Position numbers and translations under genes: made by a program
The notes under the pieces: generated by a model
Seen by the model: only the letters and a program-made list of their open reading frames with translations
The model's database searches: none
Told to the model about the DNA's origin: nothing
Shown: piece after piece, positions 1 to 15,900 of the stretch
Position numbering within the stretch: position 1 is the stretch's first letter
Layout: every line of letters begins with the position of its first letter
Source of the DNA: Anthoceros angustus
Lineage: Eukaryota; Plantae; Anthocerotophyta
Assembly: GCA_010909165.1 (NCBI GenBank)
Contig: MU008197.1
Span: 62,001 to 126,000, forward strand
Direction of reading: 5' to 3'
Length of the DNA stretch: 64,000 bases

Positions 1-611
1 CCTGAACTTGGCAATGGGTCCCTCGCTATTTCAGGCAGCCAAGCGCGTAGTGTGATGAGATGTGATAATATGCCCTGGCAATGGAGACGGTGGCGCATTA
101 TCAGGCAATCACGTGTTCCGTACATGTGCGATTTACAGCCTGCTTTGTCCTAAACCCTGAAATCTCGACGTCCGACGTGCGCACGACCCATCTCTCCCGC
201 AGCTCTGTAGAGTCGGCATGCAGGTCCGTGGTTGAGCTCTCTGTGTGCCGATTGCCCGTGCAGGATTGTAGACTAGTCGCCTGCTGGTCCTCGGGAACGG
301 GCTGGGTGCGTGCTCGACCCGGACGTTTGGGACTTGGCGTTTCTCAAAGTACCCACATCGGGACGGATGCTGCCTGCCTGCGTGCATGTTGACTGCACAT
401 GTTGACTACTGGCTGGCCCCCAGCCTGGAGGCTCGGTGCGCAATGCGGGAGCGGCATGGCTACAGCGGTCGTCTCGTCTCTGGATCACAACAGGCCTGCA
501 GCTCTTGCTGCAGCAGTATATATGGGGATTGCCTGCACGGAATGACATCATCCGGCGTCTGTCTGCGTTCAGTGTTTCATTCACTGCTCTGCAGCCCTGA
601 GTGTAGGAAAC

Positions 612-3453
612 ATGGGGCTCCGGCTGCTGGGCCTGCTTCTCGTGCTCTTGGTTGCTGGCAGCGTTGTTCGGGAGGCCAGTGCAGGCTATGACAATGCCTA
701 TTCCTATGGCTTCGACCAGCCGAAGCAGGAGGTGAAGAAGCCCGAGGAGAAGCCGTACAGGAAGCCCGCGGAGCAGCCGTACAAGAAGCCCGAGGAGCAG
801 CCCTACAAGAAGCCAGAGGAGAAGCCCTACAAGAAGCCAGAGGAGAAGCCCTACAAGAAGCCATACAAGAAGCCAGAGGAGAAGCCGTACAAGAAGCCAG
901 AGGAGAAGCCGTACAAGAAGCCAGAGGAGAAGCCGTACAAGAAGCCTGAGGAGAAGCCGTACAAGAAGCCTGAGGAGAAGCCGTACAAGAAGCCTGAGGA
1001 GAAGCTGTACAAGAAGCCTCACCACGAGAAGCCGTACAAGAAGCCAGGAGGAGAAGCCATACAAGAAGCCAGAGGAGAAGCTATACAAGAAGCCAGAGGA
1101 GAAGCCGTACAAGAAGCCTGAGGAGAAGCCACAAGAAGCCTGAGGAGAAGCCCTACAAGAAGCCGGAGGAGAAGCCGTACAAGAAGCCTGAGGAGAAGCC
1201 GTACAAGAAGCCACAGGAGAAGCTGTACAAGAAGCCACAGGAGAAGCCGTACAAGAAGCCAGAGGAGAAGCCATACAAGCCCGAGGCGAAGCCTTACACG
1301 AAGCCTCACCACGAGAAGCCATACAAGAAGCCAGAGGAGAAGCCATACAAGAAGCCAGAGGAGAAGCCATACAAGAAGCCAGAGGAGAAGCCATACAAGA
1401 AGCCAGAGGAGAAGCCATACAAGCCAGAGGAGAAGCCATAAGAAGCCAGAGGAGAAGCCATACAAGAAGCCTGAGGAGAAGCCCTACAAGAAGCCCGAGG
1501 CCCTACAAGAAGCCGAGGACAAGCCGTACAAGCCAGAGGAGAAGCCTTACAAGAAGCCTCACCACGAGAAGCCATACAAGAAGCCAGGAGAAGCCACAAG
1601 AAGCCTGAGGAGAAGCCCTACAAGAAGCCTGAGGAGAAGCCCTACAAGAAGCCGAGGAGAAGCTGCCAAGAAGCCAGAGGAGAAGCCAGAAGCCAGAGGA
1701 GAAGCTGCAAGAAGCCTCACCACGAGAAGCCTGTACAAGCCAGAGGAGAAGCCATACAAGAAGCCAGAGGAGAAGCCATACAAGAAGCCAGGAGGAGAAG
1801 CCACAAGAAGCCAGAGAAGCCATACAAGAAGCCGAGAAGCCCTACAAGCCTGAGAAGCCCTACAAGAAGCCCGAGGACAAGCCACAAGAAGCCTGAGGAG
1901 AAGCCTTACAAGAAGCCTCACCGAGAAGCCATACAAGAAGAGGAGAAGCCTACAAGAAGCCTGAGGAGAAGCCCTACAAGAAGCCTGAGGAGAAGCCCTA
2001 CAAGAAGCCTGAGGAGAAGCCGTACAAGAAGCCAGAGGAGAAGCCGTACAAGAAGCCAGAGGAGAAGCCGTGCAAGAAGCCAGAGGAGAAGTTACAAGAA
2101 GCCCGAGGCGAAGCCTTGCACACGAAGCCTCACCACGAGAAGCCACAAGAAGCCAGAGGAGAAGCCATACAAGAAGCCAGAGGAGAAGCCATACAAGAAG
2201 CCAGAGGAGAAGCCATACAAGAAGCCAGAGGAGAAGCCATACAAGAAGCCAGAGGAGAAGCCATACAAGAAGCCAGAGGAGAAGCCAGAAGCCAGAGAAG
2301 CTGTACAAGAAGCCTGAGGAGAAGCTGTACAAGAAGCCTCACCACGAGAAGCTGTACAAGAAGCCAGAGGAGAAGCCATACAAGAAGCCAGAGGAGAAGC
2401 CATACAAGAAGCCAGAGGAGAAGCTGTACAAGAAGCCTGAGGAGAAGCCCTACAAGAAGCCTGGAGGAGAAGCCCTACAAGAAGCCGGAGGAGAAGCTGT
2501 ACAAGAAGCCTGAGGAGAAGCTGTACAAGAAGCCACAGGAGAAGCCAAGAAGCCACAGGAGAAGCCGTACAAGAAGCCAGAGGAGAAGTTACAAGAAGCC
2601 TGAGGCGAAGCCTTACAAGAAGCCTCACCACGAGAAGCTATACAAGAAGCCAGAGGAGAAGCCAGAAGCCAGAGGAGAAGCCACAAGAAGCCAGAGGAGA
2701 AGCCATACAAGAAGCCAGAGGAGAAGCCAGAGGAGGAGAAGACAAGAAGCCAGAGGAGAAGCCATACAAGAAGCCTGAGGAGAAGCCCTACAAGAAGCCT
2801 GAGGAGAAGCCTACAAGAAGCCTGAGGACAAGCCGTACAAGAAGCCCGAGGAGAAGCCTTACAAGAAGCCTCACCACGAGAAGCCATACAAGAAGCCAGA
2901 GGAGAAGCCCTACAAGAAGCCCGAGGAGAAGCCCTACAAGAAGCCTGAGGAGAAGCCCTACAAGAAGCCCGAGGAGAAGCCGTACAAGAAGCCAGAGGAG
3001 AAGCCGTACAAGAAGCCAGAGGAGAAGCCGTACAAGAAGCCAGAGGAGAAGCCATACAAGAAGCCCGAGGAGAAGCCTTACAAGAAGCCTCACCACGAGA
3101 AGCCATACAAGAAGCCAGAGGAGAAGCCATACAAGAAGCCCGAGGAGAAGCCGTACAAGAAGCCCGAGGAGAAGCCATACAAGAAGCCCGAGGAGAAGCC
3201 CTACAAGAAGCCCGAGGAGAAGCCCTACAAGAAGCCTCACCACGAGAAGCCTTACAAGAAGCCAGAATACAAGCCCAAGCCGGACTACAAGGCTCCTTCA
3301 CCCCCCAAGTACCAGGCTCCTCCACCTCCCTACTACCAAGCTCCTCCTCCTCCCTACTACGAGGCCCCATCCGCCTCGTACGAGAAGCCTGAGGAGATTC
3401 CGTCTCCTCCCGCCCCCTACAGCCAAACCCCTCCCACTTATCCCAAGTATTGA
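612..3453 (+). CDS. Secreted repetitive Lys/Pro/Glu/Tyr-rich cell-wall protein (extensin/PRP-like); frame broken by indels in the repeat
   Basis: ATG 612 with signal peptide MGLRLLGLLLVLLVAGSVVREASA. About 2.5 kb of KKPEEKPY repeats, then ...QAPPPPYYQAPPPPYYEAPSASYEKPEEIPSPPAPYSQTPPTYPKY and TGA at 3451-3453. The repeat peptide reappears in shifting frames. Confidence 0.85.
735..3270 (+). repeat. 24-bp coding tandem repeat (aagaagccagaggagaagccatac) with interspersed 27-bp KKPHHEKPY variant
   Basis: Directly visible; the cctcaccacgagaag variant occurs about 11 times (one degenerate). Confidence 0.95.
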
Positions 3454-4584
3454 GCAGGTAGCTCATCCGGGACAGAACCATGGCTCTGCACTCTACAAGG
3501 TACTTTGACATTTGTCCACTGTCTGGCATTGTCTGTTCCTGCAGCCCAGGATGCTCTCAACTTACCATATATTCATCCGTGATTGGCAGACTGAGCGGAC
3601 AACGCCAGCGGTGTCCCGGCGCTGACGAACTTCCCCCATTGCTCTCACCTGGATCAACCGGCTATCCTCCGCGAAGAAGGAGCTCCGGAATCCTGAGCGA
3701 CGCGATGGGCGCTCCTTCAAGTCCACAGACTTTAGGATCTTACTAACTATTGTATCAGAGATCGTGGCTAGATCTCCGAAAATTCTTTGCAGCCCCTATT
3801 AGTGGCTGTTTGCTAATTGTAAAGGGCACGTCCTTCGGATTTGCGCAAGTTTGATTGCACAGATCCTAAGTAGAGCCATTCGAGATTATTTACATGTGCA
3901 CCTGGTTGAGATCAATCCAATCCCACACTCCCAAGGTTCTGACCTCGCTTTGCTTACAGCGCCAATTTCTTTGTCAGCTCATAATGTTCGCCCTCTCGGC
4001 CATGGACCGGACTGCTAGATGCAAAAAGCAGCCACAAACAATAACAGCCACCCATGCTGGAAGGGACAAGTTATGCACCACTTCAACCCAAACGAGGAAA
4101 GCAGAAAAGTTATTTGCTTCAAGCCAGTATGCCAAGCACTTGGCAAAACGTTGGACTTCCAAGGATTCCTTTGAGGTGCTGCTTCCAACGATTCCTTGGA
4201 GGCTGATTTCCGGGGCCCCAAGTGGCCTTCTATCCTGCAGAGACAAGGAGCTATGTTCAGCAGGGAAGGCTAGAAATTAGCGATCGTAGCCCAAGCAGAG
4301 AAGAGCTCCCGAAAGGAGGTGGGTAATTTCATTTTTGCTCCCACGGACCACACAGGGTCGACTTAATTGGACTGAAAGGTTCGGCCGAAACGTACAGCTA
4401 AAATGTCCACGCTTGACACTGTGAGCCCTAATGAACTTTGCGCCCAATCCAGCTGCGTGCAGAGAAGTGTTGAAGGCGGCTCTGCAAACAATCGGCACAG
4501 TTTCTGCATGGTCCTTGAGGCGATGAGTCCCTTCAGCGGGACTGGGATCCCATGGCGTGACAAGGAGCTGCCGGTGCCACCAAG

Positions 4585-7569
4585 ATGCGCTGTGGTTTTC
4601 TGCACAGATGCATCAAGCAGGCAGATGTTGTGGCTGGCAGGCCAGTTCTTTCTTGGAGACTTTCCAGTGAACAGTGTAGGGATTTTGCTGGGGTTGTGGC
4701 CCGGGAAGGTCTTGTTCCCTCCCGTTTTCTGGAAGCAGATAATGGGCTTGGTGCATGGTCTCCCTGGAACCTGTTGGCCTGGGCGCAGGAAGCCATTGCA
4801 GCTCACGGCAGGCAGGGACAGACTGAGCAGGCCCTGAATATTTTCCGGCTCTTGCTAGAGCGGAATGTGAAACCCGACGTCGGAGTGTACGTCGCCGCTT
4901 TGAAGGCCTGTTCTGGAGGGAAAGCCCTCGTGGAGGGCAAGCTGATTCATCGTCACATTGTCGCAAGCGGCAATGAATCGGATCTGTTTGTGGGCAGCAC
5001 CTTGGTTGACATGTATGCCAAATGCGGGAGCCTGGTGGATGCGCGGTCCGTGTTCGACAGATTGGCAGTCAAGAACTTGGTGACCTGGACTGCAATGATT
5101 GCAGGCTATGCACGGCTCGAGTGTGGCCTCGAGGCACTGGCTCTCTTCCGTCTAATGCGAGAGCAGGGTCTTGAACCAAACGGGTACACACTTGTAGGCC
5201 TTGTGAAAGCTTGCGCCAGTTTGGGATCGCTGGCTGAAGGCAAGGTGCTTCATGCCTACATCTTGGGAAGAGGGGTTGAATCCGATCTATTTGTCGGAAG
5301 TGCCCTTGTTGCAATGTATATCCAGTGTGACAGCCTGGAGGATGCACGGATTGTTTTTGAGAGAATGCCGACAAAAAGCCTAGTAACATGGACAACCATT
5401 ACCTCAGGATATGTTCAAAGGGGCGATGGTAATGAGGCCCTTCGACTGTTCCGGCAAATGCTAAAGGAGGGCTTGCAACCTGATAAGCTTGTTCTGGTGA
5501 GCATCTTGAAAGCATGTTCTAGTATTGCGGCCTTGGATGACGGCAAGGCAATTCATGCTCAGCTTTTAGAAGCTGGTTTTGCATTAGATCTGCTCGTGGG
5601 AAACAGTCTCATTGACATGTATGCTAAATGTGGGAGTCTGGTAGATGCTTGTGATGTATTCCACACGTTAACAAGAAAAGATTTGGTGAGCTGGACAACA
5701 ATGATTGAGGCTTATGCCCAACACGGGTTTGGTTGCGAAGCTGTAAATCTGTACCACGATTTGCAACAGGAGGGCCTGGAGCCAAATCATGTGACCCTGC
5801 TTGGTGTATTGAAAGCCTGTTCAAACATAGCCGCCTTTGAGCAGGGCAAGCTGGTCCATTTGTCTGTTGCAAAAAGTGGTTGTGAGCCAGACTTGTACCT
5901 TGTGACCAGCCTGATAGATATGTATGCCAAATGTGGGAGTGTGGATGATGCAAGGAATTTGTTTGAGGCTTGGGGTAAAACCAGTTTGGCTGCGTGGAAT
6001 GCAATACTGGCGGGATATGCCCAGCATGGGTTGTGCCATGAGGCTATTGAACTATTCCATGAAATTGGAAAACACGGCATGATCCCAGACAAAGTCACCC
6101 TCTTGAGTGTCATCAAGGCATGCTCCACCGTAGAATGTCTGGAGCAAGGAAAGCTCATTTGTGGAGAGATCATCGAAAGGGGTTTTGAATCAAAAGATGA
6201 GATTGGCAATGCTTTAATACACATGTTTTCCAGTTGCGGCAGCCTGGAGGATGCACGTGTAGTGTTTGACAGAGTTCATACCAGAGATTTGGGTTCATGG
6301 AACTCAATGATCGGTGGGTACGTCAAGCATGGGTATGAACTGATTGCTATTGAACTCTTTGAAGAAATGCCAGTCCAGGGCGTGCAGCCCGATCAAGCAA
6401 CGTTCATGAGTATTTTGAAAGCTTGTGCCAATATGGGATCTCTTCAGTACGGGAAGCTTATGTACGCCCAGATTAAAGAGTTTGGACTTGATCAGAATGA
6501 CTCTGTAGCCAGTACAGTCATTGACATGTTTGCTAAGTTAGGGAGCCCGGAGGATGCATACAGTGTCTTTAGTAGTGTGCCAAGGCTTAGCGTAGTGACT
6601 TGGAACGCCATGTTAGCAGGCTTTGCTAATCACGGGCTGGGTGCTGAAGTCCTTCAAATGTACCAGCTCCTGCACAGGGAGGACTTGCAGCCAGACAAGT
6701 ATACATTTCTCAGCATTCTGAACGCATGTTCTAGTGGTTCAGCACTAAATCAGGGCAAGCGTATTCACGCTGAGATCAAGAGGTGTGGGTTAGAGACAGA
6801 TGCGTTCATCTCAAGCGCCCTTATTGACATGTATTCGAAATGTGGGAGTTGGGAGGAAGCACGGATTGTCTTTGATATCTTGCCAACGAAGAATGTGGTG
6901 TCCTGGAATGCAATGATTGCAGGCTACGCTCAGCATGGTCGTGCAATGGATGCACTTCAACTGTTTCAGGATATGCAAGCTGATGGCATGCTTCCAGACG
7001 CTGTCACCTTTGTCAGCTTGCTTTCGGCCTGCAGCCACTGTGGTTTGTTGGACGAGGCCTACACATTGTTCCACTCCATGTCAGAGGTATATTGCATCAG
7101 ACCAGAGATGGAGCATTATGTTTGCATGGTTGACCTTCTTGGCCGTGCTGGGCTACTATCTGAAGCGTTGGCCTTTGTCAACAATATGCCATTGTCTCCT
7201 GAAATTGATGTGCGGATGTCTTTGCTTGGAGCTTGCCGGACCCATGGGAATGTTGACTTTGGGAGACCTGCTTTTGAGGGTGTGCTGGAGTTAGATGCAA
7301 CAAAAGCTGCTGCTTATGTCATGATAGCTGACATTTATGCTCTGAATGGCAAGCTGGAAGAAAGTGCACATATTAGAAGGATGATGCAAGGAACAGGCAT
7401 GAAGAAAGAACCTGGTCGCACGTGGATGGAATTAGAAAATGAGGTGCACTCATTTACTGTTGAAGACAAAAGGCACTCAGATAGAAGTCAGTTGTATGCT
7501 GAGCTGGAGAAATTGCTGGAGGCGGTCAGAGGGGAGTACACCAAGGGACTACTAGCAAACTGTACTTGA
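4585..7569 (+). CDS. PLS-class PPR protein, E/E+ subclass, no DYW domain (organellar RNA-editing factor family)
   Basis: 994-aa single-exon ORF with repeated P-L-S motifs (LIDMYAKCGS, VSWNAMIAGYAQHG) and E/E+ motifs (KKEPGRTWMELENEVHSFTVEDKRH). Stops before any HxE/CxxC/DYW. True start uncertain. Confidence 0.93.
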   Translation: MRCGFLHRCIKQADVVAGRPVLSWRLSSEQCRDFAGVVAREGLVPSRFLEADNGLGAWSPWNLLAWAQEAIAAHGRQGQTEQALNIFRLLLERNVKPDVGVYVAALKACSGGKALVEGKLIHRHIVASGNESDLFVGSTLVDMYAKCGSLVDARSVFDRLAVKNLVTWTAMIAGYARLECGLEALALFRLMREQGLEPNGYTLVGLVKACASLGSLAEGKVLHAYILGRGVESDLFVGSALVAMYIQCDSLEDARIVFERMPTKSLVTWTTITSGYVQRGDGNEALRLFRQMLKEGLQPDKLVLVSILKACSSIAALDDGKAIHAQLLEAGFALDLLVGNSLIDMYAKCGSLVDACDVFHTLTRKDLVSWTTMIEAYAQHGFGCEAVNLYHDLQQEGLEPNHVTLLGVLKACSNIAAFEQGKLVHLSVAKSGCEPDLYLVTSLIDMYAKCGSVDDARNLFEAWGKTSLAAWNAILAGYAQHGLCHEAIELFHEIGKHGMIPDKVTLLSVIKACSTVECLEQGKLICGEIIERGFESKDEIGNALIHMFSSCGSLEDARVVFDRVHTRDLGSWNSMIGGYVKHGYELIAIELFEEMPVQGVQPDQATFMSILKACANMGSLQYGKLMYAQIKEFGLDQNDSVASTVIDMFAKLGSPEDAYSVFSSVPRLSVVTWNAMLAGFANHGLGAEVLQMYQLLHREDLQPDKYTFLSILNACSSGSALNQGKRIHAEIKRCGLETDAFISSALIDMYSKCGSWEEARIVFDILPTKNVVSWNAMIAGYAQHGRAMDALQLFQDMQADGMLPDAVTFVSLLSACSHCGLLDEAYTLFHSMSEVYCIRPEMEHYVCMVDLLGRAGLLSEALAFVNNMPLSPEIDVRMSLLGACRTHGNVDFGRPAFEGVLELDATKAAAYVMIADIYALNGKLEESAHIRRMMQGTGMKKEPGRTWMELENEVHSFTVEDKRHSDRSQLYAELEKLLEAVRGEYTKGLLANCT

Positions 7570-8081
7570 TGGTTTACGAAAACGTGATTGGTGCACCTGC
7601 AGCTTATACCTCCGTGTGTCCTGAAACAGTAGCATACGAGACGAGCTATTTTCAAAACTTGTGGCCTTCTATCTGGAGTATTAATTCTATCTCCCAATGT
7701 AATCTCTTCGTTTGCATGTGAAGACTTTTTTTGCCAGGCTTTAAAGGGCAAGAAATTTTGGCTAATGCTTGTACTTGCTTGTTCTTTACCCCTGAAGTTG
7801 TAGCCTGACTGAACAGATGAAAGTGGATTTACAGGTCGGAGGTCTATGGGTCTGTATTTCAAGCTTTTTTGTTTTGTTAGTGAGGGGTCACTTTCTGTAT
7901 ATCACTTAGATTGCTTCATCTTTCCGTGTTGTGAAGTATGTATCAGTTTAGCAATGGTGATGGTAGTGACAAGGATAAATATAGGTGCTGACGATTTACA
8001 TGGATTTTTTTGGCATGGGAAAGTAGCTTCCTTTTTTAAGTTTTGAGTCTTGAAGAGCAGAGTTTCTATGCACCTCTCGAC

Positions 8082-8216
8082 GCATAACATTGCAAGCCTG
8101 TTAATCCTCGTAAATGGATTGACCGGTTCTATCATTATGCAATAACAGCCTAGGCTCTCCCGTTAGCTCCAATGCTAAATATGTCTGTTAGCATTGGTGA
8201 CACGGGAGGGACATCC
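8082..8216 (+). ncRNA. Candidate box H/ACA snoRNA, copy 1
   Basis: Hairpin GCATAA/TTATGC with upper stem GTTAATCC/GGATTGAC; H box ATAACA (8142-8147); second hairpin CTCTCCCG/CGGGAGGG with CCAATGCTAA/TTAGCATTGG; ACA at 8211-8213. Confidence 0.8.
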
Positions 8217-8440
8217 AAACTTGTTTCTTCTACAGTGTTTGCAGAATAGCTCTTAGTGCACTTTGATGGGGGGGTACTAGGCTTCCACCTAGTGTCCTCT
8301 GATGCCGTAGGTGTCCACCCGGTGCTCTCTTTCAGTCCACCTCCAAGTGCATTCTGATGGTAGTGGGCTCCCGCAGTGCTTACTCTGTGTGATCAGTCCT
8401 TCAGTCCTCAATGTGCGTTTTTTTTACTTTGACCAAGAAT

Positions 8441-8572
8441 GCATAACATTGCAAGCCTGTGAGTCCTTATCATGGATTCATCGGTTCTATCATTATGCTA
8501 CAGCAGGTCGTTCACCAGTTAGCTCCACCCATGCCCTTGTATGGCATGGTTGGTGACACTGGAGGTACATCT
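8441..8572 (+). ncRNA. Candidate box H/ACA snoRNA, copy 2 (paralog of 8082-8216)
   Basis: Same pocket sequences (CATTGCAA/TTCTATCA and TTAGCT/TGACA), diverged but still pairing stems, H box ACAGCA (8500-8505), ACA at 8567-8569. Confidence 0.8.
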
Positions 8573-8985
8573 GTACTTGGTAGTTGCGATCCCATTTTTG
8601 CGTTGAGTGAGTAGTCACAGCATGTTAGGAGACGGTGCTACCACTGATTCATCTGGCTGTCGTGGTTCACTGATTTTCTGGCCTTCTGGAGGATGTTACC
8701 ACCACCTACTTCGGAACAAAAACCTATTTCCCGACTTCCTGATTGTGCTTCAGCACTTTCCTGCGCTTGCTGCACTGCCCAGCCCAAGCAAAAGTGGGCC
8801 GTGGTTGTACAGGTGAAGTGGACTCATGTGAAGGGTCGAACAGAAACCAAATATCACAGTTAAATCGATGAAAACGACGGAATTTCTGGAGTCTGTCCTG
8901 GGACAGGTGACAGAAGCTTGGTGGTGAAGGGAAAGGATTGTGTGAACGATCCGAGTGCCCTGGACATTTTCGTGACGTCTCTGTG

Positions 8986-10854
8986 ATGGCGTTAGGTGCT
9001 ACGTACATCCGAGGATACTTCATTTCCAGCTCCGCAGCGCTGTTTCCCACGTCCTCCAGGCTTCGTTTGTGTCTCGCTTCATCCAGATCGTCCTCGTCGG
9101 GCTGGGAAGTGTCAGAAGGGAGTGCACTTCGTGAATTGACATCGAGCTTGTACAGTCCCGGCAAAGAATGGCAAACCATGCTACAATCCGCCGCGGAAGT
9201 TTTGAAGGTGGAGGCGAGACGTCTCGACGTGCCGTTGCTGGCTCCCTTCGAAATTGCGTCCACCAAGCTGACCTCGGTGAACAACGTCGCAATTCGGCTG
9301 GAGCTCACAGACGGCAGCGTGGGATGGGGGGAGGTTCCCACCTTGCCTCCTGTCACTGCAGAGGACCAGCCTACCGCGTTGGCCAAAGCCGAGGAAGTCT
9401 GCAGCCTACTGCCGGGAAGTCCAGACAGTTGCCTTCATATTTTGGAGCGAATTACAGGCCTTCTTCCCGGCCACAATTTCGCATCTGTAAGACTGCTGGC
9501 GGATTCGCGTGGGTTTTTTCGTTTGTGGGGGCAGGATAGAGCTTCGTAACCTTTGCAAGTGGGACTGACCGCTCGATTGTGCAACAGATCAGAGCCGGGA
9601 TGGAGATGGCTTTTGTTGATGCCGTTGCTCGAAGAGCTGGTCTACCTCTCTGGCAGCTTTTCGGAGGTCATGGCAATTCTGTAACAACGGACATCACGGT
9701 GAGAACCGGCAGTGCTGTAGAAGTTCAGAACGCTTGGACCCTTCCAAAGCATTGGACTGACACATCACGTAGGAGAGCATGCCTCATGTTGTGCATCTTG
9801 TTGTTACTATAGATAGCATGCTGTCTCCCGGTATTAAGGAATGATTAACACTGATGCGTCCAGATACCCATATGCACACCAGAAGAAGCAGCAGTCTTGG
9901 CAGCAGACTATGCAAAGAAAGACTTTAACACTATCAAAGTGAAGATAGGAGGAAGAAGTCCCTCGCAGGATATTGCGCTGTTGAGAGCTGTAAGAGGTAG
10001 CCATCCAGCCTGTTCCCTTATACTGGATGCAAATGAAGGCTACACCGTGGATGAAGCTCTGCAAGTGTTAAGGACTCTGCATGGTGAGTACTTGAGGCAT
10101 TACCATTGCTCACGGACTAAGAAGTCAAGGATAAGCTTGTCGGTTTCGGTTCAAGGAGAGCTCTTCTACATTGTGATAGTTACTTCTCAGTGCTTCCCTG
10201 CAGAGGCTGACCTGACACCAGTTCTCTTCGAGCAGCCTGTCGGTCGAGAAAACTGGGCTGGACTAGGCCACGTTTCCAAGGTTGCCAACGGCGTGTACGG
10301 AGTCTCTGTTGCTGCGGATGAGAGCTGCCGATGCCCTTTGGATGCGGAACGTATCGTGAATGAGGGCCTTGCTGACGTTATTAACATCAAACTGGCAAAA
10401 GTTGGGCTTCTTGCGGCATTGCAGATAGTGGGCATTGCAGGTAATGCAGGTGTTGACTTGATGATAGGGGGCATGGTGGAAACGCGCCTTGCAGTGGGAT
10501 TTGCTGGCAACCTGGCTGCCGGTCTTGGTTGCTTCAGGTTGTCTCTCCACTTTATGCTACAATCGTCATTCATACTCTTACCATGAGGTGGACCATGACC
10601 GAATAGTGGGCCAACCTGGCTTTGCAGATTCGTAGATCTCGATACCCCACTTCTCCTGGCCAAGGATCCTGTACAGGGAGGCTACCATGGTAAGTAAACC
10701 TCCTGCCAAGGCACTCCTTACCAGTAGTGGGCTTCTCTACCGTGCAAAAAAATGCTGTTTCTAATCATACCGATTCTGCTGGTGCGCAGTGAGTGGATCG
10801 GTCTGTAGTTTTAGTGCTCCCTCTGGCCATGGAGGATCACTCCTGTGGACGTAA
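8986..10854 (+). CDS. L-Ala-D/L-Glu (dipeptide) epimerase, enolase superfamily, with Ser-rich transit-like N-terminus
   Basis: Exons about 8986-9486, 9588-9698, 9864-10083, 10204-10537, 10628-10689, 10789-10854 with GT-AG ends. Motifs GWGEVP, TIKVKIGG, LDANEGY, EQPV, ADES, NIKLAK, GGMVET, DLDTP. Confidence 0.9.
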
Positions 10855-12997: not shown

Positions 12998-15900
12998 TGT
13001 TAGAGATTCAATCCTCTGCTACTTACTCTAGTATATTAGGATATATTAGGATATTGCACTATCGAGTCTAGGGCTTACCTCCTCGATAGTTGCCTAGCCT
13101 AAGGGCTATATATGTAGCACCTGCACCTATTGATGCGCATCGTGGAGCCTATCTAAGCCGGAGCTTTGTGTGTGCCATCCATTACCGCCAGGTCCGCTAT
13201 GTGTTGATCCTGTCACGTGACCGCCGTGGCTTGCCAGGCCTTGTGCAATTCTAACATGGTATCAGAGCGGGAACACTGATTGCGAGACTCGACAAGAGAG
13301 GACGGAGTCGCGATGGCAATGAGCTTAGTGAGCTTAGCTATGCGATGCCCCAGGGATTGCAGAAGCTATTCTTATATCGCTCTATGCCTGAAGCTTGGTC
13401 AGGGTTCATCGACTTCCTCATAGCCCAAGACAACCTCACATGGGAGGAGGCGACGTCCATGCCGGGGCGGGAGACTCGCCATTGGATGCAAAGGCGGGTC
13501 CTCAACGGTCCGAGCATGCGATGTCGCCAAGGGAAGAGACGGAACAACACGAACAAAGACACGCAGGGAAGTCCTCGCAGGACATCGTGACCAACGAATA
13601 AGAAGGGACAATGCCTAAATGCTTCAAGTATGGTCATTACGAAGGAGTGCAAGGACAAGAAGACCGCGAATCTCACGGAGAGCGAGAGTCAAGACGAGGT
13701 CGCAGAGGCAAGACTTGTAGAAACGGCATTTCAAGAATTTCGCAAAGACACGAGCGAAACGATACACCGAGCTTGATTCTGCATGTACATCCTTCATGGT
13801 GAAGGATAAGGAACTTCTTCACAAGTTCGGGCGAAGTCGGCGCCTGGGAATGACAATGAGATAGGAGTTCGTGGTTCGAGAGTATAGGCTTAGACCGCTT
13901 GACGGGAGGTCAAGGCGGAAGGAGCGCTCTTTGTCCCTAACCTACGCAGAAATCTCATGTCCGTTGCACCGTTGACAGACGCAGGTCTGCAGGTCCTTTT
14001 TACGAAGAAGGAAGTTTTACTTCTGAAGAATGGACAGATGCACGGCGATGTGGTGGCAAAAGGCCACCGTACAGGGAACTTGTACCAGATGGAGGTTCCT
14101 GACGACCAAGAGGTTCTGACTGTGTCGGAGAAAGGTGGAAATGCCTTGCTGTGGCATAGACGGTTCGGGCATACCAACCTGAAGTTTCTCCTGGATATGG
14201 AGCGCAAGAAGCTAGTGACAGGCATGGAGCTCCAAAAGGCGTAACTCGATGCGGCGACGCTTGCATGAAAGGCAAGCACCCCGACGGTCATATGTTTCAC
14301 CACCAAGAGAGCAAAGTTTTGGAACTTGTTCACTCGATCTTATGTCCAATGCAAGTGGACGCAAGAATGCTACAAAGTAGGTACTACATTTCGCTCATTG
14401 ACGATTACAAGAAAGTAATGGTGTACTTCCTGGAAGAAGAGTGATGCTCTCAAAGCATTTCGATGTTTAGGCGATCATGAGAAACAAACCGGCAAGAAGT
14501 TGAAGAAACTTGACGGATGGGGAGGAGAGTATTTGAGTACACTCTTCAAGGATGAATGCGCAGGAATTGAGAGACAGCTTGACGACAGGTACACGCCTCA
14601 ACAGTGGATTGCCGAGCGGAAGAATCGCACCATCCGCAACGCCGTCAAGCATGCTAGCAGAGTCACCGCCTAAGTATTTCGCGACGCGTTGCAACAAAGA
14701 CCACGATGTAATATGTCGATAACCATGGCGCTAGGTGGATCTATGACACCCCATGAAGCTTGGTTTGGTGAGAAACCAAATGTCTCACACTTGAGAGTGT
14801 TTGGTCACAGAGCATATGCGCATGTTCCTAAGCAACCGCGAAGAAGTTGGACGATGAAGCATCAAGTGCGCTTCATTGGTTATGCGAATGAGCGAAAGGC
14901 TTACTGATTGTGGGATCCCGCCGCCAGCGATGCATGAAAGTTCGATGTCGTGTTCGATGAGAACAATATTGGAAGTCATGCGAGAGCACGGCCGCTTACA
15001 TGCACTCGACTCGAGTTTATCCAGACACCTTCCTTGTCCCGCATCCACCAATGACAAGAAGAGGATCACCACACCAAGGGTGATGGTGAGGACATCCCAG
15101 TGAGGTCATACCACCTATTGTTCCCGCAGGAATTCTGAGGAGGAAACTGGAAGTAGCACAACAAAGAAGCAGATGTTGAGGAGTTAGTTCCAAAGATTGG
15201 AGGATGCAGAGGACTAACCAATAGCAGTTTATTCCGAGACGGTCGACAAGGGTTCGACATTCATGAAGGTCCTCGAGAATGCCCACTCAACATGGTGAGC
15301 GGACCGTAATGGTGTTTTCTTCTCAAGATGATATCCCGCCACAATTGAGGAAGCACGAAACGGACTCAAGGTGAGTTCGAATGAAGCTATTCAGATCGAG
15401 TATAATTCGATGCTCGAAAACAACGCTTGACGTTGGTTGATTTGCCACCCGGGAGGAAAGTCACGCAAGTGGACTTTCAAGAAGAAGTACAATGCCGACG
15501 GATCTCCGGAAAGGCATAAGGCGAGACTAGTGGCTCATGGTTTCACTCAGTGAAAGGGCCGGACTACGAGGAGACCTTCTCCCGTAGTTCGCATGCATAG
15601 ATCTCAAAGGTGTGATTCAGATCTCATACCTCCGCACCGAGGAGATGGTGGCGGATATCTTCACCAAGGCGCCGCGCAAAGTTTGCACATTTCGTTCGGA
15701 TCTTGGCGTCGGTAAGTAGCTTTAGCTTGAAGGGGAGTGTTAGAGATTCAATCCTCTGCTACTTACTCTAGTATATTAGGATATATTAGGATATTGCACT
15801 ATCGAGTCTAGGGCTTACCTCCTCGATAGTTGCCTAGCCTAAGGGCTATATATGTAGCACCCTGTGCGCCTATTGATGCGTACTGTGGAGCCTATCTAAG

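Follow-up and report, generated by a model that had tools for sequence, protein, structure and literature searches.

Box H/ACA guide RNAs direct the conversion of chosen rRNA uridines to pseudouridine. Within the 64-kb stretch of DNA from the hornwort Anthoceros angustus analysed here (the window), two units with a common layout lie on the + strand at 8082-8216 and 8441-8572, between an upstream PPR gene and a downstream enolase-superfamily MR/MLE gene. This raises the question of whether the two units are genuine genes of this class and, if so, which uridines they would address. Judged from sequence and structure, the two loci look like genuine paralogous box H/ACA snoRNA genes, and we put the probability of this reading at about 80%.

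As read from the sequence between positions 7800 and 8900, each unit consists of a hairpin of about 59 nt with a large internal loop, a hinge containing an ANANNA motif, a second hairpin with an internal loop, and ACA followed by three bases. Copy A (8082..8216, 135 nt) begins with hairpin 1 (8082-8140), whose pocket is formed by the 5' strand CAUUGCAAG at 8088..8096 and the 3' strand UUCUAUCA at 8127..8134. The H box AUAACA follows at 8142..8147. Hairpin 2 (8155-8210) carries the pocket strands UUAGCU (8163..8168) and UGACA (8198..8202), and the ACA box at 8211..8213 stands 3 nt ahead of the inferred 3' end at 8216. Copy B (8441..8572, 132 nt) repeats this layout on the same strand, with hairpin 1 at 8441-8498, its pocket strands CAUUGCAAG and UUCUAUCA at 8447..8455 and 8485..8492, the H box ACAGCA at 8500..8505, hairpin 2 at about 8511-8566 with UUAGCU at 8519..8524 and UGACA at 8554..8558, and ACA at 8567..8569, ahead of an inferred 3' end at 8572.

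Both H boxes match ANANNA and are placed in the hinge that joins the two hairpins, as expected for the class, and in both copies ACA comes straight after the lower stem of hairpin 2, with the inferred 3' end 3 nt further on. In hairpin 1 the first pocket base lies 14-15 nt upstream of the H box, and in hairpin 2 of both copies 13 nt separate the upper stem from ACA; the pocket-to-box distances of both hairpins agree with the spacing of about 14-16 nt that characterizes H/ACA RNAs. In copy A the terminal loops are UCGUAAAU and AUAUGUCUG, and those of copy B are UUAUCAU and CUUGUAU. No loop in either copy contains a CAB box (UGAG), the criterion for a scaRNA, and a Cajal-body snRNA guide is thus not indicated.

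Alignment of the two copies showed that the pocket (guide) bases are identical at 28 of 28 positions over all four strands, compared with 70 of 108 (65%) elsewhere. The strands common to both copies are CATTGCAA(G)/TTCTATCA in hairpin 1 and, in DNA letters, TTAGCT/TGACA in hairpin 2. The lower stem of hairpin 1 is identical throughout (12/12 positions) and its upper stem retains 18 of 22, while identity amounts to 9/20 in the upper stem of hairpin 2, 6/14 in the hinge and about half of the positions in the loops. The alignment holds 37 pairs of the structure described above, with 95.9% of cells paired. Seven of the 37 pairs are altered on both sides yet still paired, five of them in the hairpin-2 upper stem and one each in the hairpin-1 upper stem and the hairpin-2 lower stem; this covariation count rests on two sequences only and is not a phylogenetic test. 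In two more pairs a one-sided change has produced a wobble, and three cells lack a partner. In copy B the hairpin-2 lower stem contains two non-pairing oppositions, A x A and U x U, and an upper stem contains a C x U mismatch. As a control, the 3' partners were slid by 1-3 columns; pairing then stood at 32-43%, with 0-1 double changes. Helices that covary around unchanged loops are the signature that a guide RNA under selection would leave in both copies.

Unconstrained folding of copy A recovered the full two-hairpin shape with a free hinge (MFE -49 kcal/mol; whole-RNA z -4.7; covariance model 164.9 bits). For copy B (MFE -46.9 kcal/mol; z -2.9; 150.1 bits), hairpin 1 was recovered, and in the 3' half of the MFE structure part of the hinge is additionally paired with the ACA region, a pairing that is unlikely to form in vivo. 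Folded alone, hairpin 2 of copy B gave a z of -1.55, which is not significant. A sequence-only reading had proposed a paralogous H/ACA pair with compensatory stem changes, and every part of its description that was checked was borne out: the two copies of 132-135 nt with the order hairpin, H box, hairpin, ACA, the 13 nt between pocket top and ACA, the identical pocket strands, and stems that diverge while keeping their pairing. The upper-stem sequences that it quoted are likewise correct and paired, apart from the C x U mismatch in copy B.

The starts of the two copies are 356-359 nt apart, and the alignment is restricted to the RNA-sized part. The upstream flanks, the 224-nt spacer (8217..8440, outside both RNAs) and the flank downstream of copy B cannot be aligned past a few bases after ACA, and the spacer folds no better than chance (z -0.02). 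Since the spacer is unstructured and the flanks are unalignable, conservation appears confined to the RNA itself. A third RNA within the spacer was ruled out by the same fold value together with the lack of box C/D motifs and of any notable Rfam match. The only remaining likeness of the 3' flanks is an ACUUG located 4-5 nt after the inferred 3' ends (8214-8223 and 8570-8579); in addition, a T8 run (8419-8426) lies 14 nt upstream of copy B. The shared ACUUG and the T8 run could act as signals for processing, or could be remnants of the duplication.

Neither further copies nor known relatives were detected. The conserved 17-20-mers occur nowhere else in the 64-kb window beyond these two places (shuffled sequence gave about 0 matches), and a covariance model built from the pair found no third copy there. 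A scan of the whole window against Rfam 15 at gathering thresholds, the check proposed for novelty, matched no family, and scans at permissive E-values, run on the 1.3-kb region and on each copy alone, returned nothing relevant. The best permissive match, SNORA54, reached 16.5 bits where its gathering score is 60, and reflects only the generic H/ACA shape; miRNA precursor models gave weak hits of a generic hairpin kind (E 0.25-7) that fell far short of their gathering scores. In a metagenome scan, the strict 28-base pocket pattern gave 0 matches and a relaxed 22-base pattern gave 76, which we regard as chance because the fourth pocket strand plus ACA is missing in every one. The pocket words are also absent from the first 200 of 621 files in the supplements of a plant snoRNA target archive (PMC5122169).

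We also searched for orthologues through the neighbouring genes. The downstream MR/MLE gene was searched exon by exon rather than as a joined spliced model, and homologues of its exon 1 (58-72% identity) led to six loci in other plants (L189-L194), in which neither BLAST, motif search nor the covariance model revealed the snoRNA. For the upstream PPR protein no record was found, and its homologues are paralogues of no more than 46% identity. The snoRNA pair is a family outside Rfam, with no orthologue in the collections searched.

The upstream gene (4585-7569, + strand) is intronless and encodes a 994-aa PLS-class PPR protein with an E motif and, according to Pfam, no DYW domain; its closest relatives in the database share only about 45% identity. 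Both the PPR family and the complementarity to plant rRNA agree with a land-plant origin. The downstream gene (about 8990-10590, + strand) contains introns, begins about 400 bp past copy B and encodes an L-Ala-D/L-Glu-epimerase-like protein with an MR_MLE_C domain. A search for a Telo-box, site II, USE or canonical TATA near the pair yielded nothing informative. The pair could be an independent unit, or it could lie in an intron of the PPR 3'-UTR or of the MR/MLE 5' leader. Elsewhere in the window, two + strand ORFs (612-1121 and 2070-2778), mirrored by - strand ORFs across 273-3529, form a long run of PEEKPYKK-type proline/lysine-rich repeats preceded by a signal-peptide-like start (MGLRLLGLLLVLLVAGS...). 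They matched no Pfam family, and look like a gene for a repetitive secreted or cell-wall protein. A fragment with a GAG-pre-integrase domain at 13957-14244 (+) is probably the remnant of a Ty1/copia retrotransposon.

To predict targets, the pockets were scored on angiosperm rDNA. The rDNA was taken from plant contaminant contigs in bacterial assemblies, located by a 5.8S motif, and all of it is seed-plant like. Complete seed-plant rDNA units occur on contaminant contigs in dozens of bacterial and MAG assemblies (L001-L112), for example those of Candidatus Burkholderia leaf-nodule symbionts and of Modestobacter, Vibrio and Collinsella MAGs. Rfam was used to annotate three complete units; in L012, whose numbering is used below, 18S spans 1253-3059, 5.8S 3322-3477 and 25S 3669-7055. 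Every U was scanned as a potential target in the arrangement 5'-[pairs with 3' pocket strand]-U-N-[pairs with 5' pocket strand]-3', and shuffled pocket strands provided the null distribution.

With hairpin 1 (CAUUGCAA(G) / (U)UCUAUCA as query) and two unpaired target bases, no convincing rRNA target was found, as 288/1000 and 66/1000 shuffles were as good. The best match by a wide margin is U1553 in helix 43 of 18S (L012 numbering), within GAUAGA-UCA-UUGCAAU, where UUCUAUCA pairs with GAUAGA and CAUUGCAAG with UUGCAAU. This match comprises 6+7 Watson-Crick pairs and no G-U (0/1000 shuffles as good). Three target bases (U-C-A) are left unpaired versus the canonical two, because the pocket strand AUUGCAA pairs with UUGCAAU. 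U1553 follows directly on the 3' side of the helix that the 3' pocket strand would form, the placement seen with canonical guides, and each of the 39 plant 18S loci retrieved contains the segment GAUAGAUCAUUGCAAU. A second, weaker candidate for hairpin 1 is U3286 of 25S, where the same strands pair with GGUAGAA and UUUGCAG in GGUAGAA-UCC-UUUGCAG, again around three unpaired bases, with 11 Watson-Crick and 3 G-U pairs (2/1000 shuffles); the canonical register at this site allows only 7+3 pairs. The arms of the predicted pairings have energies of -5 to -9 kcal/mol each. The most likely target of the 5' hairpin, as predicted from these pairings, is thus 18S U1553 in helix 43, with 25S U3286 as the alternative.

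For hairpin 2 (UUAGCU / UGACA), the best site is U3212 of 25S in L012, in canonical geometry within CGUGUCG-UU-GGCUAAGU, just 74 nt from U3286. UGACA would pair with UGUCG and UUAGCU with GGCUAA, giving 11 pairs with the core strands (7/1000 shuffles). If the closing pairs of the lower stem are opened in copy A, the match extends to 13 pairs (1/1000 shuffles), including two G-U pairs beside the pocket top. Accordingly, the predicted target of the 3' hairpin is the 25S uridine in UGUCG-UU-GGCUAA. It corresponds to U3216 in tomato numbering and falls in expansion segment ES39/helix 98, at a site that varies among seed plants: many dicot sequences have it, and monocot-like ones are altered. Arabidopsis Psi3177, which also lies in ES39 and has no known guide, was ruled out as the hairpin-2 site, since it is located about 25 nt upstream; the sarcin-ricin loop and tomato Psi3114, which is Arabidopsis Psi3100, served to calibrate this offset.

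Published modification maps allow the three candidate sites to be compared with other plants. The quantitative MS map of tomato rRNA shows nothing modified in 25S between Psi3114 and Um3305 and no modified AUCAUUG fragment in 18S (PMC9483110, supplement 2). As this map lists nothing there, 18S U1553, 25S U3212 and 25S U3286 are unmodified in tomato, and the predicted pseudouridines, if real, would be lineage-specific. Likewise, the Arabidopsis pseudouridine and 2'-O-methyl tables contain no pseudouridine or H/ACA guide at the three sites (PMC8351944 supplements). Arabidopsis 18S-Um1554 is an orphan RiboMethSeq 2'-O-methyl site without a C/D guide (PMC8583080). In the 1808-nt numbering it is equivalent to U1553 of L012, as shown by the offset at the equivalent of E. 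coli C1402 (C1645 there, C1644 in L012), and neither the tomato nor the tobacco map shows its signal. That Um1554 and the predicted U1553 are the same uridine is a coincidence and not support.

These results modify the target assignments of the sequence-only reading. The 18S segment that it had proposed for the 5' pocket exists and far exceeds the shuffles, but its pairing had been mis-stated, as three rather than two bases stay unpaired, and the uridine in question is neither a reported Arabidopsis pseudouridine nor modified in tomato. The 3' pocket, which it had suspected of being an orphan, need not be one, given the canonical candidate in ES39, itself unmodified in tomato.

Three alternative readings were weighed. 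That no snoRNA is involved, and that a duplicated hairpin-rich segment such as a transposon or miRNA precursor has acquired the H/ACA layout by chance, is in our judgement extremely improbable: the weak matches to generic miRNA precursor models are what it can draw on, against an exactly placed H box and ACA, correct pocket-to-box distances, two loops significantly complementary to rRNA, and no further copies in the window. Moreover, invariant internal loops between covarying helices are the reverse of what a miRNA hairpin displays. The units could also be decaying or silent duplicates that have lost expression or function, whether both were once snoRNA genes or a live gene stands beside a pseudogene. 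The missing Telo-box, USE and canonical TATA fit such a scenario, as do the A x A and U x U oppositions and the weaker fold of copy B, including its hairpin 2. We nevertheless give decay very little credence, as each copy retains its H box and ACA, all 28 guide bases and an intact hairpin-1 lower stem next to a spacer and flanks that have diverged past alignment, and as the stem substitutions are overwhelmingly pair-preserving, which needs purifying selection on both copies.

A further possibility accepts genuine H/ACA snoRNAs and questions their role, in that at least the 5' pocket would not direct rRNA pseudouridylation; it could act on an snRNA, an mRNA or a pre-rRNA spacer, or chaperone 18S helix 43 without modifying it. 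snR30/U17 provides a precedent, as it acts at ES6 of 18S as a folding or processing chaperone and introduces no modification. The 5' pocket fits rRNA only with three unpaired bases, and at the predicted sites tomato shows no modification and Arabidopsis no listed pseudouridine. The pocket of human SNORA57 for 18S-Psi1004 also leaves three target nucleotides unpaired, and this RNA, expressed in yeast, did not modify yeast 18S (PMC8522698). Another study cites both a tolerance of extra unpaired bases and an about 10-fold loss of in vitro activity from one added unpaired base (PMC9122591). Against this reading stand the 13-bp perfect match to 18S, far above chance, and the canonical placement of the target U next to the 3'-pocket-strand helix, and the terminal loops without CAB boxes run contrary to a Cajal-body snRNA guide. 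Taken together, we find this possibility quite unlikely.

The preferred reading is that two tandemly duplicated, independently maintained genes would specify a single box H/ACA snoRNA species, about 132-135 nt long, both genes probably being processed from one precursor. By analogy with established H/ACA RNPs, each RNA would assemble with Cbf5/dyskerin, Nop10, Nhp2 and Gar1, and each internal loop would bind rRNA on either side of a uridine, which Cbf5 would isomerise to pseudouridine. The 3' hairpin would guide 25S U3212, and the 5' hairpin would most likely guide 18S U1553 with three unpaired bases, for which human SNORA57 is a precedent, or alternatively 25S U3286.

The pair resembles the H/ACA snoRNAs of Arabidopsis and rice (snoR72-snoR162) in size, two-hairpin layout, dual pockets, multi-copy or tandem genes and predicted rRNA targets, but differs from them in matching no Rfam sequence or structure and in having predicted sites outside the listed Arabidopsis pseudouridines. 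With human SNORA57 the hornwort 5' pocket shares the three unpaired target bases, whether it acts on 18S or on 25S; the sequence is unrelated and the target site is another one, and the likeness is one of mechanism only. As in snR30/U17, an internal loop of an H/ACA RNA would pair with 18S in a non-canonical register, whereas the use of the 3' hairpin, the conserved m1/m2 motifs against ES6 and the much greater length of the yeast RNA are missing in the hornwort pair; snR30/U17 serves solely as a model for the chaperone possibility.

A more far-reaching view is that the non-canonical 5' pocket acts on 18S U1553, by modification or as a folding chaperone, and that this site and the one in ES39 carry pseudouridines present in hornworts and absent from seed plants. 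We regard this as unlikely; if true, it would reveal a lineage-specific modification mark in the head of the small subunit, or a modification-independent folding chaperone at 18S helix 43. Should the target predictions hold, they would add two pseudouridines that tomato lacks and the Arabidopsis lists omit, and a naturally occurring pocket that leaves three target bases unpaired. The understanding of how H/ACA RNPs work is unchanged by the pair, and its practical value lies in annotation and in the reading of future hornwort pseudouridine maps. Few snoRNAs of hornworts have been catalogued, and they escape Rfam models that were built from seed plants. Each well-supported gene adds to the view of how rRNA modification differs among land-plant lineages.
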